From positions 1-64,000 of the forward strand of contig JAADVB010000050.1 of assembly GCA_023334545.1 (NCBI GenBank): a stretch of 64,000 bases of DNA. Reading direction: 5' to 3'. Source of the stretch: Salisapilia sapeloensis CBS 127946 (taxonomy: Eukaryota; Protista; Oomycota). The notes below the pieces were generated by a model, which searched no databases, was not told where the DNA came from, and saw nothing but the letters and a program-made list of their open reading frames with translations. Position 1 is the stretch's first letter. The number at the start of each line of letters is the position of its first letter. The position numbers were made by a program, and so were the translations under genes. Below, one piece after another: positions 2,159 through 6,372 of this stretch.

Positions 2159-3679
2159 TTAACATGACGGACCTTTGACCCATTCATATCTCGCACTCTT
2201 TTCTTCTACTAAGACATTGGCCTCATGCCACTCAGATGCTGCCAATTGAGCCATTAGCTCTGGCAAAAGATCTTTCGATTCGTCATAACTTGATCCAAGG
2301 ATGTCCCATAAATCTGTCGCTTGATCCTTGGATTCTAATTGTCGTTGGGCACAGATAGCATGCAAGTTAGCAGCAATGATACCTCGACTCATTGCATCCT
2401 TCTCAAACGCCATGCGAACTTGAATGTTATTGTTTGACTCTGTCAAGCTGAGAATATAGCGCTCTTGATCAAATATCGATTGTAGTCGAGACAACTTCGA
2501 CATAGAACCTTGCGCAATGTCATATAACGATGCTTCAGTCTGGACATTAGACTTTGGATATAACGTATACGTTCTTCCGACAAGTGTCGAGACATAGCGC
2601 TCTTGCTCACACACATGGTCAATGTCTGGAATTGTCTTTTCATTGACGAAAGCGGATAGAACAAGATGCAAGCGCTGGAGGTTCAGTGTCTTGAGAGACA
2701 CGTAGCTCAGCGAACGATATAAAGTTATCATATGCACACCTGATAGTGCTGCAAATGCTACTAGGATTGACGTAGTTGCATCTCCAGTAGCTTGAGATAG
2801 GAGGATGCCGACTCCAGTGCCTACGACGGACGCTGCGATGCTCTGGGACCCAGCCTTCGCAGTGATATCTGCCAAGTTCTCGTGGGTTGCAAAGGCATAG
2901 TGTAAACCAGCACGAGTGGCACTGGCACTGAGCCACGAGATGTTTTTGGCTACATTTGCGAGTGACGCCATAGGTAGGAAGTAGGAAGGAAAGAGTGGTG
3001 TGAGTAGTTCGATTAGAATGGCGGCATCTAGTGCGATGGAAGAGGCAAAGCGCCATCGTTTTGGATCTGCGTCATATCGGTTATTGATAAAACCAGCAAA
3101 AAGCACACCACCGAATTGGCCTAGACCGTCTTTCAAAACCCAGTTCACTGCGGCGGCAGTTGGAATGGAGCCGGCGCCTAGACCGATGGCATACAAGAGA
3201 GACTGCATCGAGAGGACACCTGCTGCAGAGGATACGACAGAGGAAGCAAAATACCATTTGGCGTAGGGAATATAGTTGGATGGTACAGACGATTGATAGT
3301 CTTTTGGAAGGAAGAGTTCAGACATGGAAACCGACATGCGATGGGCTGATTCCGCCCAAAACTCTTTTGCTGCTTCCGTAGCGTTTGTACTGGCAGATTT
3401 ATGGCGTTGCAAGATATCTAGTAGAGGTTGCTTCGGTTCAACTACTTGTAAATCGTCCTTTTCTTCTTCATAGTTAGAGAGAGCGGTGGTAGCAGCTTGG
3501 TAAACTCGATGAGCACCATTGGATTTGTGCTGCTGCTTTGCAATCACATTTCCTTTGTTGCTACTGACAATAGAGCTTGCAACAAGTTTCTCAGAGCTTT
3601 TGTACCGAACTGAAGTCCAGCAAAGCTGCTGTAAGGTTCTACTTCGCTGTCTACGAGCAGTGGTCACCGTCCGGATCAT
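2159..3679 (-). CDS. RUS1/ROOT UVB SENSITIVE-like (DUF647/RUSF1) membrane protein
   Basis: 506-aa intronless ORF with family motifs FLPKDY..SV..NY..Y, NWVLKDGLGQFGG, DADPKRWR, ENLADITAK..SQ and L...TLN.QRL. The N-terminus is Arg-rich. Confidence 0.9.
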   Translation of the reverse strand: MIRTVTTARRQRSRTLQQLCWTSVRYKSSEKLVASSIVSSNKGNVIAKQQHKSNGAHRVYQAATTALSNYEEEKDDLQVVEPKQPLLDILQRHKSASTNATEAAKEFWAESAHRMSVSMSELFLPKDYQSSVPSNYIPYAKWYFASSVVSSAAGVLSMQSLLYAIGLGAGSIPTAAAVNWVLKDGLGQFGGVLFAGFINNRYDADPKRWRFASSIALDAAILIELLTPLFPSYFLPMASLANVAKNISWLSASATRAGLHYAFATHENLADITAKAGSQSIAASVVGTGVGILLSQATGDATTSILVAFAALSGVHMITLYRSLSYVSLKTLNLQRLHLVLSAFVNEKTIPDIDHVCEQERYVSTLVGRTYTLYPKSNVQTEASLYDIAQGSMSKLSRLQSIFDQERYILSLTESNNNIQVRMAFEKDAMSRGIIAANLHAICAQRQLESKDQATDLWDILGSSYDESKDLLPELMAQLAASEWHEANVLVEEKSARYEWVKGPSC

Positions 3680-3709
3680 GTCTTATGGTAAAATGAAGAG
3701 ATCAAAAGT

Positions 3710-3723
3710 GAAATGAAAAATGG
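3710..3723 (-). promoter_or_regulatory. Oomycete INR-FPR core promoter element upstream of the RUS1-like gene
   Basis: The minus strand reads CCATTTTTCATTTC, matching YCATTYBNNNWTTY, 30 nt upstream of the ATG at 3679. Confidence 0.6.
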
Positions 3724-3785
3724 CTATTTTGAACTTTAGTTTCCACTGGTTTTCAACATGGCCCAAGTCTTCTTAACGATCCGAG

Positions 3786-4073
3786 ATGAAGAAGTCGGAA
3801 CTCATTCAGCACTTGTACAAGACAGCACAGACTGTAACGGACCGCAAAAAGCTCACGAAACTTCATGTGGGTGCCGTGACACAAGAGCTTATTAACACGC
3901 TTGCACGCGACTTGCGTGAAGACGGCAGTGCGTCTCTCAGCGGATTCGGTCGATTTGACATTGCCAAGACGACGGGCATGATCAAGTTCACGCCTTCTAC
4001 TAAGCTCATGGACAAGATTGATGGTGATGTCTCGACAGCCTCAGACAATCACTCTGATGACGACGATGAATAA
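3786..4073 (+). CDS. HU/IHF-family (bacterial histone-like) DNA-binding protein, shortened arm, acidic C-terminal tail
   Basis: 95-aa intronless ORF. MKKSELI matches HU helix 1 (MNKxELI), the central helix is followed by SLSGFGRFDI (LxGFGxF), and KFTPSTKL matches the terminal FxPxKxL strand/helix. Confidence 0.75.
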   Translation: MKKSELIQHLYKTAQTVTDRKKLTKLHVGAVTQELINTLARDLREDGSASLSGFGRFDIAKTTGMIKFTPSTKLMDKIDGDVSTASDNHSDDDDE

Positions 4074-4174
4074 AACATCCTTGAACGTAGCAAGTTCATC
4101 AATACAGCAGATACGATAAACGAAAAGAATGAAAAGCATGTAAATCGTCGATATTGGTCACTACATTCTTCTTT

Positions 4175-5169
4175 CTATGCGAAGTTAATCCACGCTCGCC
4201 ACAGACCAACCACGGATTCTGTGAAGCAGCAGAATGCGATCAGAGGTTCTACATGTGCATAGGATAAGTACAATCGAGCGAGTTTATAGTCAAGTAGCTG
4301 GACCTGGGAAGACACCACCGTCGACAGACCAGTGAATGCTCTCTGTAAAGTAGCAGGCATTCCGGAGTTGCACATAGTAGAGCTCACGTCGTCTGTATCA
4401 CTTTATCAATATGCAATTCGTTATTAGAAAAGGTAGTGCATAGACGCCTACCGTAGGCGAATCTCAGACAGCATGGCTTGTAGCTATTGATAGAATAAGG
4501 TCATGGCTTTGAAGTAGCTGGCATTAAGCTAAAAAAGCTGTACCTCTTCGGTCTTAATGTCCTTGGACGCCATGGCCTGCTTCTCCTTCTCCTTCAGTGC
4601 ATTGATACTAGGAGTGCATATAGGATAAACAATAGACAATGAATGAGTCAGGAAGCTGAGTACCGTTGATAGTTGATGTACATGTCCAAGACAATGTACA
4701 TGGCCCAGATGACACAGGACTGGCGAGAGTACCTGTCTGCGTCCACTTTCAACAGCTTTGGTGCTCTACAAGATGGACATTAGTATGATGGTAGTGGCGC
4801 GAATACAATCTCAAGGGGATTTTCGTACACGTAGCCAATGTACGAGACGTGTTCGAGAGGGTGGTACAAGAGCATGCTGTACGCTTGCAATCGCACCAAG
4901 TTGCGAATGTCTTTGCTATCGTCTGATAGGCACCAAGAGTCTCGTTGGAGAGCTTCGTAGGCTTCAAACGTCCCGGGGAAACGGAGGATGTAACGAGCCA
5001 TGCTGATGCTACCCGCGAGCTGCTGGAGGCCGACGGCTGTGTCGCCATGCTTAGGGGAAGAGTGTGCGAGGACTCGTCCGAGAGCACCGCAGGTATACGC
5101 GATCGTTTTGCATAGCTTGTCGGCACGGCCTGCCGAGGCGGTGAACGCTACCAGCTTGGCTCCCTCCAT
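4175..5169 (-). CDS. PEX11: Peroxisomal biogenesis factor 11 (PEX11) family, multi-exon
   Basis: N-terminal GRADKLCKTIAY, SMARYILRF and YHPLEHVSYIG. The spliced 3' end reads SIHWSVDGGVFPEPLIAFCCFTESVVGLWRAWINFA*. Confidence 0.8.
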
Positions 5170-6372
5170 GATGTGTTTACTCGACTTGCTGTTAAGTGGT
5201 TTGGCCCGTCACGACTTTTCAAGATACCGATGGAGGAAGTTCGTTTCAAAGGCCGTAGAGGACCTCTGTGTTCCTATCGTGGTTGCCTGTAAGCGTGGAA
5301 TAGATTCTTTTAGGCGGATTCAGACATTGAGTGTTTGGATATCACGTATATAGCAATAAGAGTCCAAGTTTCCACTTCGAAAAGAGGAGTATCTATCATA
5401 ACTAGATGTATCCCAATGCTAACGCTGGCAAGCATTGAACCCAAGGTCATAAATTCGTCCTTGTAGTGCTGAATGGAGCTGTCAAGATGAAATAAAGAGT
5501 CTGCTATGGAGTTGACCACTTTAGGTAGTAGCTATAATGCATTCATCCGAAGTAATACTTGAAGATGTTCGTCTGTGGATCTATCTAGCAACTCGATCCT
5601 TGTCTTTATTTGAAGATACAATCAACCATGTGATGAGGTCACACAAAGGCTGTATCCGTTATCCTAAGTCGTATCTTCTGGGTACCTTTGTCAGGTGCAG
5701 GTACGACATGCATAGAGCGTTGACTTTAGCATTCTGCGTATCCATACGATTCCTTGCAAGTAGCATGTCAAGATGAGATGATGACGATTATATCCTCTAC
5801 GCTATGCTCAAAAGAGAACGTCTTTTATTTGAGTGTCCAGCACATGCCTCGATGTTATTGATAAACTTGAAGCCGGTACGAAGAGCTAGTTTCAGTTGTC
5901 AGATAGAAAATTAATCACCTCCAAGCATTAGCATACATCTATTAAATTGATCTGCTCGCATGTCGTACAATAGGAATCGTATGATAGGAGAATGCCGAGT
6001 ACCAGGACGGATGTGCAGACTTGTACAAGCTCCATTTCGTTATCGTAAACCAGAAACACGTGCTAGCGTACTACTCATCAAGTACCTCGTACAAACGGTA
6101 CGGTCGGTCTTTCTGATTTAAATTGATGACACCTCCGAATACGCCTCATTCAAGGCCGATGCCGCTCCCGTCCCAAGTTAAAATCAAGTTGGACCTCCCA
6201 TGTCAACATGGATGGAACGTCATTGGAGCGGCGCAAAATTTACCAGCCGCATTCGGCCCACGAAATGACGAAGCGGATGAGGTGTAGAACGTGGCTGAGA
6301 ATCACCTGTTGCGTGGGTAGACATGTCCGCATGTGCCCACTAGCCAATTTATTCACGTGCAGCTCAAGTCCC

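Follow-up and report, generated by a model that had tools for sequence, protein, structure and literature searches.

The window analyzed in the present work is the whole 64,000-nucleotide stretch of Salisapilia sapeloensis DNA that is presented above. An ATG-initiated, intronless open reading frame on its forward strand, at positions 3786–4073 in the ORF listing, encodes 95 amino acids and a stop; the product is referred to here as the HU-like protein, and its frame is closed on the 5′ side by an in-frame TAA at 3774–3776. The features which the first-pass annotation had read from this frame, namely an initial MKKSELI, a GFGRF motif, the 9 residues DIAKTTGMI, a KFTPSTKL motif and the end SDNHSDDDDE, match the sequence exactly. 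A 14.8-kb DNA contig carries the gene with intron-bearing eukaryotic genes on both sides of it, in keeping with the earlier claim that it is nuclear-encoded, and the earlier description of its surroundings as ordinary housekeeping genes is borne out by the neighbours found in the window: RUS1/UVB_sens, PEX11, STT3, anoctamin, POT, FGGY and DOT1. The features of the locus are the following:

2159–3679, reverse strand: RUS1/UVB_sens-like gene, the divergent neighbour (Pfam PF04884, E 1.4e-72)
3680–3785, no strand: divergent intergenic region of 106 bp shared with the RUS1-like gene, a probable bidirectional promoter (RUS1 ATG at 3679 on the reverse strand, HU-like ATG at 3786; RNA contigs end at 3670–3674 and begin at 3780–3784)
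3758–3760, forward strand: out-of-frame upstream ATG in good context (A at −3, G at +4), read from the sequence; the 5′ ends of the three RNA contigs all lie 20–26 nt further downstream
3780–4157, forward strand: overall extent of the unspliced RNA contigs (run X4, 3780–4157; run X2, 3784–4147; organism B, 3781–4005), the true ends of which may lie slightly further out
3786–4073, forward strand: HU-like coding sequence (ORF listing; PF00216 match above threshold; homologues at E 2e-21)
4131–5180, reverse strand: PEX11 gene of 233 aa with five introns of 55–63 nt, convergent with the HU-like gene (RNA joints; spliced translation)

Within the divergent intergenic region, on the strand toward RUS1, are the sequences TCATTTC and TCATTTT, which we take to resemble oomycete initiator elements. 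On the other side of the gene, 101 nt (4074–4174) separate the stop codons of the HU-like and PEX11 genes, and at the 3′ ends the RNA contigs of one gene extend approximately 27 nt into those of the other (4131–4157). The N-terminus of RUS1 is fast-evolving. A further plus-strand gene at 1500–2160, with at least 4 introns of 58–70 nt (joints at 1612/1679, 1745/1816, 1886/1946 and 2010/2069), is convergent with the RUS1-like gene, whose 3′ end it faces, and a single RNA contig spans both.

Transcription of the locus can be followed in runs X2 and X4, which derive from the same organism as the window and from samples other than the probable DNA source, X1. These two runs are RNA assemblies, because GT..AG and CT..AC joints occur in the neighbouring genes, while no such joints are present in the DNA run X1. 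In both RNA runs a discrete, unspliced contig of approximately 370 nt covers the HU-like ORF, and a contig with five differences covers it in X6, a run of the closely related organism B, so that the transcript on which the first-pass annotation had made its reading depend is seen in two samples and in a second organism, in contigs that carry no strand, exact ends or expression level. A search of the RNA contigs across 3780–4157 for a joint or a loose 5′ end found none. Because the RNA contigs contain no upstream spliced exon, the protein has no N-terminal extension or targeting peptide, as had been claimed; the in-frame stop at 3774 and the alignment of the start with residue 1 of bacterial HU agree with this. 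The upstream ATG opens a 45-codon ORF (3758–3895) which overlaps the HU-like start, but since all three contigs begin downstream of that ATG, the HU-like mRNA may carry a very short leader.

Comparison of the window with organism B provides a measure of selection on the gene. All 4 of the differences listed within the HU-like ORF are synonymous third-position changes, while the 18 differences in the adjacent 5′ region of RUS1 comprise 7 synonymous and 11 non-synonymous changes. In terms of positions, the divergence is approximately 8% in the RUS1 5′ coding region (3405–3674, mostly non-synonymous) and approximately 2% in the HU-like ORF (3781–4005).

An ORF this short could in principle be a chance reading frame, a decaying relic, bacterial contamination or a recent, functionless transfer, and the exact protein is absent from the gene-call collection and was without a match in initial word-index searches. 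That absence says nothing, however, because RUS1 is absent from the same collection, and the remaining evidence is strongly contrary: homologues appear at E 2e-21 in an exhaustive search, the listed differences to organism B are all synonymous, the RNA contig is discrete in independent samples, the 14.8-kb DNA contig places the gene between intron-bearing eukaryotic genes, the synteny with PEX11 is conserved, and one relative has an intron. Explanations of this kind are effectively refuted and retain only a minimal probability. The interval 3786–4073 holds a genuine nuclear gene, intronless and transcribed, on which purifying selection acts.

The exhaustive search covered 1.84 billion protein representatives with the window protein as the single query, and returned 14 matches with E-values down to 2e-21. 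Four long matches (P0003, P0004, P0007 and P0014) were rejected as spurious; they are repeat proteins of the Ig, cadherin or FG-GAP kind that contain acidic repeats. The ten genuine relatives, which form small clusters, are 58–133 aa long and 31–53% identical to the window protein. Metagenomic or Logan assemblies are the source of every one, an NCBI or UniRef accession is lacking for all ten, and one was automatically named “nucleoid DNA-binding protein” by JGI. The 58-aa members (L008, and also L007) were truncated by the gene caller: in L008 (region 3990–4400), helix 1 is encoded in an upstream exon, and a spliceosomal intron of approximately 95 nt (GTACGT...CAG) interrupts helix 2. The 133-aa call of P0002, on JGI contigs, has a GTG-type upstream start which adds 21 residues, and the conserved MNKGQLL at residue 22 of that call is probably the true start.

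An alignment of the family with the window protein has six invariant positions (G47, G55, F57, G64, F68 and P70), with F54 being mostly F or L, and the short turn described below is common to all members. The family proteins, at 80–133 residues, contain a single HU domain. A Ser/Asp-rich acidic tail with a net charge of −7 to −16, attached to a core with a pI of approximately 10, is found in 8 of the 11 distinct lineages; P0008, P0011 and P0012 lack it, so it is not essential to the role of the fold. The region downstream of tail-less P0012 was inspected for an acidic exon hidden behind an intron, and no candidate was seen there.

Gene order in the relatives associates the family with PEX11 rather than with RUS1. 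The HU-like gene lies tail-to-tail with PEX11 in four lineages, represented by the window and by the contigs that carry P0001, P0002 and P0012, and the convergent spacing regions in relatives were observed at 3133–3238 in L001 and 3788–4377 in L002. The synteny with RUS1 which the first-pass annotation had suggested surveying is not conserved, as the related loci contain no tblastn match to RUS1. The window PEX11 is 52% identical to the HU-adjacent PEX11 of L001 and 33% identical to those of L002/L003, and because the identities of the HU-like protein fall together with these values (53%/52%, then 34%/33%), the protein is not unusually fast-evolving. Other members, from TARA and other marine metagenomes, adjoin C5orf34-like, GH47 and THOC3-like genes.

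Searches by other routes did not enlarge the family. A word-index search with the single window protein found no match, and one with the family profile found only four members already known, results which reflect the limits of the index and not absence. Pattern scans of the metagenome, viral and bacterial-genome collections with the close trio recovered only canonical bacterial and phage HUs of 90–119 aa at approximately 30% identity, and a viral scan with the divergent subfamily gave no match. From the family itself, its eukaryotic contexts, the short turn, the intron and the PEX11 synteny, it follows that this is a real, old, eukaryotic single-domain clade of the HU superfamily, and the earlier description of the protein as old and domesticated accords with the approximately ten divergent clusters, the conserved microsynteny and the intron in one lineage.

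The elements of the encoded protein map onto the window as follows:

3792–3842, forward strand: helix 1, residues 3–19, with the bacterial-HU-like MKKSELIQHL at its beginning (AlphaFold2 secondary structure; alignment to bacterial MNKSELIQHI)
3828–3851, forward strand: basic insert QTVTDRKK between helices 1 and 2, with the family pattern S/T-x-R-[KN]-K (alignment and hhalign; conserved family-wide and not found in canonical HU)
3858–3923, forward strand: helix 2, residues 25–46 (AlphaFold2 model, pLDDT 87–90 there)
3942–3956, forward strand: GFGRF motif, G53 to F57, with G55 and F57 invariant in the family (sequence, family alignment)
3963–3980, forward strand: tight hairpin turn AKTTGM in place of a beta-ribbon arm of approximately 24 residues, with G64 invariant and no RNP proline (18-residue alignment gap; hhalign 9+9 gap; model strands E55–59 and E66–70)
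3984–3998, forward strand: KFTPS, the counterpart of canonical (R/K)F(K/R)PG, with F68 and P70 invariant (family alignment, hhalign)
4023–4070, forward strand: acidic Ser/Asp tail GDVSTASDNHSDDDDE, net charge −7, with casein-kinase-2-like S-D-D-D sites (sequence; low model confidence; counterpart in 8 of 11 family lineages)

The charge of the protein is divided sharply between its two parts: core residues 1–79 have a pI of 9.8 and a net charge of +5, and tail residues 80–95 have a net charge of −7, so that the acidic tail reported in the first-pass annotation, ending in SDNHSDDDDE, is present.

Assignment of this core to the HU superfamily begins with the search against Pfam PF00216 (Bac_DNA_binding) that had been proposed as a check. 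The match is above threshold (E 4.9e-7, 30.3 bits against a cut-off of 22.4) and runs over protein residues 1–73 and profile positions 1–66 of 90; with 179 ATG ORFs of at least 60 aa in the window, it is significant at approximately 9e-5 after correction. The weaker Pfam matches are to other models of the HU superfamily, namely HU-HIG and HU-CCDC81_bac_2 (PF18175), the latter with 13.6 bits against a cut-off of 35. A single-sequence search of the PDB sequences gave weak HU matches (E 0.2 and above), while the family profile found HU in the PDB at E 1.8e-6. All 14 family sequences match PF00216, four of them above the cut-off (the window protein, P0001, P0002 and P0012), and in every member the PF00216 score exceeds the scores of the CCDC81 models. 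Among those models, PF18175 matches 10 of the 14 members weakly (best E 1.9e-5, 24.9 bits, cut-off 35) and PF14908 matches one member at E 0.037; none of PF14908, PF18289 and PF18175 reaches its cut-off in any family member.

Structure prediction leads to the same superfamily. An AlphaFold2 monomer model of the HU-like protein, built on the family alignment, has a mean pLDDT of 76.7, rising to 87–90 over residues 31–70, and its elements (H3–19, H25–46, E48–51, E55–59, E66–70 and H72–85) follow the HU order with a tight hairpin. The best 50 Foldseek matches in the PDB are all HU/IHF proteins (top E 1.7e-3, probability 1.00), and re-alignment with VIA matches the complete set of 72 ordered residues to E. 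coli HU beta2 (Z 6.1). In an exhaustive VIA comparison with 48,161 chains, Z of at least 5 was reached by five chains only, all from the HU superfamily. A second model, that of P0006 (34% identical, pLDDT 68), likewise has HU-superfamily chains as its top six matches in an exhaustive VIA comparison, at rmsd 2.5–3.8 Å. In the viral structure library the matches are phage HU-like proteins only, and African swine fever virus (ASFV) pA104R is found amid the structural matches at Z 4.8–5.2. Lower in the ranking, at Z 3.2–3.9, are doublet-microtubule inner proteins of flagella, the matched parts of which are probably HU domains of the CCDC81 type. Structural Z-scores of 5–6 are middling on VIA's own calibration, and the monomer models superpose poorly on protomers taken from dimers (rmsd approximately 7 Å for the first of them). 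Because the Z-scores are middling, the fold assignment rests on the agreement of the sequence profiles with two independent models. On this agreement the product has the HU/IHF fold, in which a pair of helices is followed by a three-stranded sheet and a C-terminal helix, and the first-pass reading of it as an HU-fold protein finds support in the PF00216 match, the hhalign comparison given below and the HU-superfamily chains at the top of the PDB matches for both models.

The protein retains much of the classical HU: the MxKSELI start, the GFGxF and F-x-P motifs, the three core Phe positions, and the order of helix 1, helix 2, three strands and C-terminal helix. Its N-terminal MKKSELIQHL is close to the bacterial MNKSELIQHI. 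What it lacks is the arm. For comparison, canonical HUs of 90–119 aa were taken from the results of the pattern scans across the bacterial-genome, metagenome and viral-contig collections. The distance from GFGRF to KF is 9 residues, compared to 27 in canonical 90-aa HUs, so that the arm is 18 residues shorter; the canonical spacing of about 25 that had been cited was close to the count of 27 obtained here, though not equal to it. In a joint alignment with canonical HU, a gap of 18 residues falls exactly over the arm, and an insertion of 7–8 residues is placed between helices 1 and 2. Alignment of the family with canonical HU by hhalign (97.3% probability, E 2.1e-11) superposes the TG of the family on the P-x-TG tip of canonical HU and leaves either strand 9 residues short, so that the ribbon is shortened symmetrically. 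The 18-residue deletion is family-wide and leaves a tight four-residue turn, xTGx. The loss of the intercalating arm, asserted from the window sequence in the first-pass annotation, is thus demonstrated both by the alignment gap and by the 9+9 gap in hhalign.

With the arm have gone R55, R58 and R61 of canonical HU and the intercalating proline, none of which the HU-like protein possesses, and canonical K80, K83 and K86 are replaced by T69, T72 and M75. Conversely, the basic motif S/T-x-R-[KN]-K carried by the family in the insert between helices 1 and 2 is not found in canonical HU. The acidic tail, the eukaryotic nuclear gene and the intron in one lineage likewise distinguish the family from classical bacterial HU/IHF. 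The short turn, the basic insert between helices 1 and 2, the basic core and the usual acidic tail together define a small, single-domain eukaryotic family.

A truncated hairpin is also the hallmark of the CCDC81 clade, the members of which are arm-truncated, charge-depleted eukaryotic HU domains for which a role beyond classical DNA bending has been proposed (PMC5499826). The HU-like family could therefore be a stand-alone offshoot of HU-CCDC81, making protein-protein contacts at the centrosome, at the basal body or inside axonemal microtubules instead of acting on nucleic acid, and both the weak PF18175 matches in 10 of 14 members and the microtubule inner proteins among the structural matches could be cited for such an origin. 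It is nevertheless unlikely. No member reaches the 35-bit cut-off of PF18175, and PF00216 scores higher in all of them; classical HU chains stand higher structurally (Z 5–6 against 3–4); and the N-terminus is of the classical HU type. In eukaryotic CCDC81 members, moreover, HU domains always occur as a tandem pair joined to further modules (PMC5499826), while the family has one, and the CCDC81 domains have lost positive charge, whereas the HU-like core has a pI of approximately 10. The resemblance of the N-terminus to MNKSELIQHI and the higher PF00216 score in every member suggest that the family descends from classical HU rather than from the CCDC81 clade.

An organellar role can also be considered. 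Those classical HUs of eukaryotes that are known to be nuclear-encoded function in organelles, the plastid-type HUs having signal peptides (Burroughs et al. 2017, PMC5499826). On this view the HU-like protein would belong to the nucleoid of an organelle, probably the mitochondrion, and would be imported with no presequence to be cleaved; its first 30 residues are lysine/arginine-rich and helical. Against this, the protein begins exactly at the bacterial HU start with no upstream exon in the RNA contigs, its relatives likewise have no extensions beyond 4–8 residues, and the arm which compacts nucleoids is missing. Long acidic tails are, in addition, unusual in imported matrix proteins. An organellar function for the HU-like protein is, on this evidence, rather improbable.

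The best overall explanation, which can be held with moderate confidence, is that the gene encodes an armless HU-fold protein, one of a small eukaryotic family, that would form an HU-like dimer and would probably not bend DNA. The conserved Phe triad and the helices imply a dimer, and the protein would accordingly pair with itself through the conserved hydrophobic core, as judged from residue conservation. Without the arms and the C-terminal lysine triad (T69, T72 and M75 at these positions), such a dimer would not be expected to clasp and kink DNA in the manner of HU. The core may still bind some DNA or RNA, given the one or two basic residues at the turn and the basic insert, and the basic body could thus bind nucleic acid weakly without bending it. 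The acidic tail, probably phosphorylated by CK2, would either mask the basic body by folding onto it, in the way of the tail of HMGB1, or bind basic partners, for example histones. The protein would then be a small architectural adaptor of the nucleus or the cytosol; this non-bending adaptor is the most likely single role for it, and is put forward tentatively, at somewhat less than even probability. The functions offered in the first-pass annotation, a nuclear or mitochondrial architectural factor or a non-bending or DNA-mimic partner, are likewise hypothetical.

A more specific proposal, which is conceivable but doubtful, is that a protist lineage domesticated an HU of bacterial origin as a nuclear chromatin protein of a new class, an armless dimer whose basic body and phosphorylatable acidic tail would bridge DNA and histones or mimic DNA. 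If this were true, the family would be a component of eukaryotic chromatin with bacterial nucleoid ancestry, distinct from both the dinoflagellate HU-like proteins and CCDC81.

HU is the textbook bacterial DNA-bending protein, and within eukaryotes it is associated with organelles, with dinoflagellate nuclei, with one virus family and with the derived two-domain CCDC81 proteins. The family described here adds a further and simpler case, in which protists, most of them marine, have long kept in their nuclear genomes a single HU domain of the classical type that has lost the element defining the mechanism of HU. It thereby constitutes a natural experiment on the capabilities of the HU body without its arms, and it supplies, from a lineage that has received little study, a candidate for a new small protein of chromatin or of the adaptor kind. 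Genes as short as these go unseen in named proteomes and surface only among metagenomic gene calls.

A full-text search of open-access papers, directed at HU in oomycetes or stramenopiles and at PF00216 in eukaryotes, turned up no account of such a protein, so that the novelty proposed in the first-pass annotation stands within that literature, although arm-truncated eukaryotic HU domains as such have already been published in the form of the CCDC81 clade (PMC5499826). The HU-like protein is a single-domain, armless, acidic-tailed variant within the HU superfamily that was not found described.

Beyond classical HU/IHF, its relationship to known systems can be stated in terms of three comparisons. 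The HU-CCDC81 clade shares with the family a eukaryotic HU-fold domain with a truncated beta-hairpin tip, but HU-CCDC81 proteins combine two tandem HU domains with a coiled coil, EF-hands or dynein fusions and have few basic residues, whereas the HU-like family consists of a single basic domain of 80 residues with an acidic tail and falls below every CCDC81 Pfam cut-off.

Other members of the superfamily in eukaryotic cells or their viruses are the organellar HUs of algae and apicomplexans, the HU-like proteins of dinoflagellates and pA104R of ASFV. The dinoflagellate proteins are nuclear, ASFV has an HU of its own, and sporadic transfers of HU into eukaryotes have been described (PMC5499826). 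In these proteins the arms are complete and DNA is bound and compacted, while the family is armless, and the organellar HUs have targeting peptides, which the HU-like protein does not. With respect to the tail, a parallel lies outside the superfamily: to our knowledge no organellar, dinoflagellate or ASFV HU has been reported with an acidic tail, while in proteins of the HMGB1 type an Asp/Glu-rich tail, which is able to fold back and modulate binding, comes after a small, basic core that binds DNA in an architectural capacity. The fold of the HMG box is unrelated to that of HU, and the likeness of the HU-like protein to HMGB1 in its tail is one of functional analogy only.
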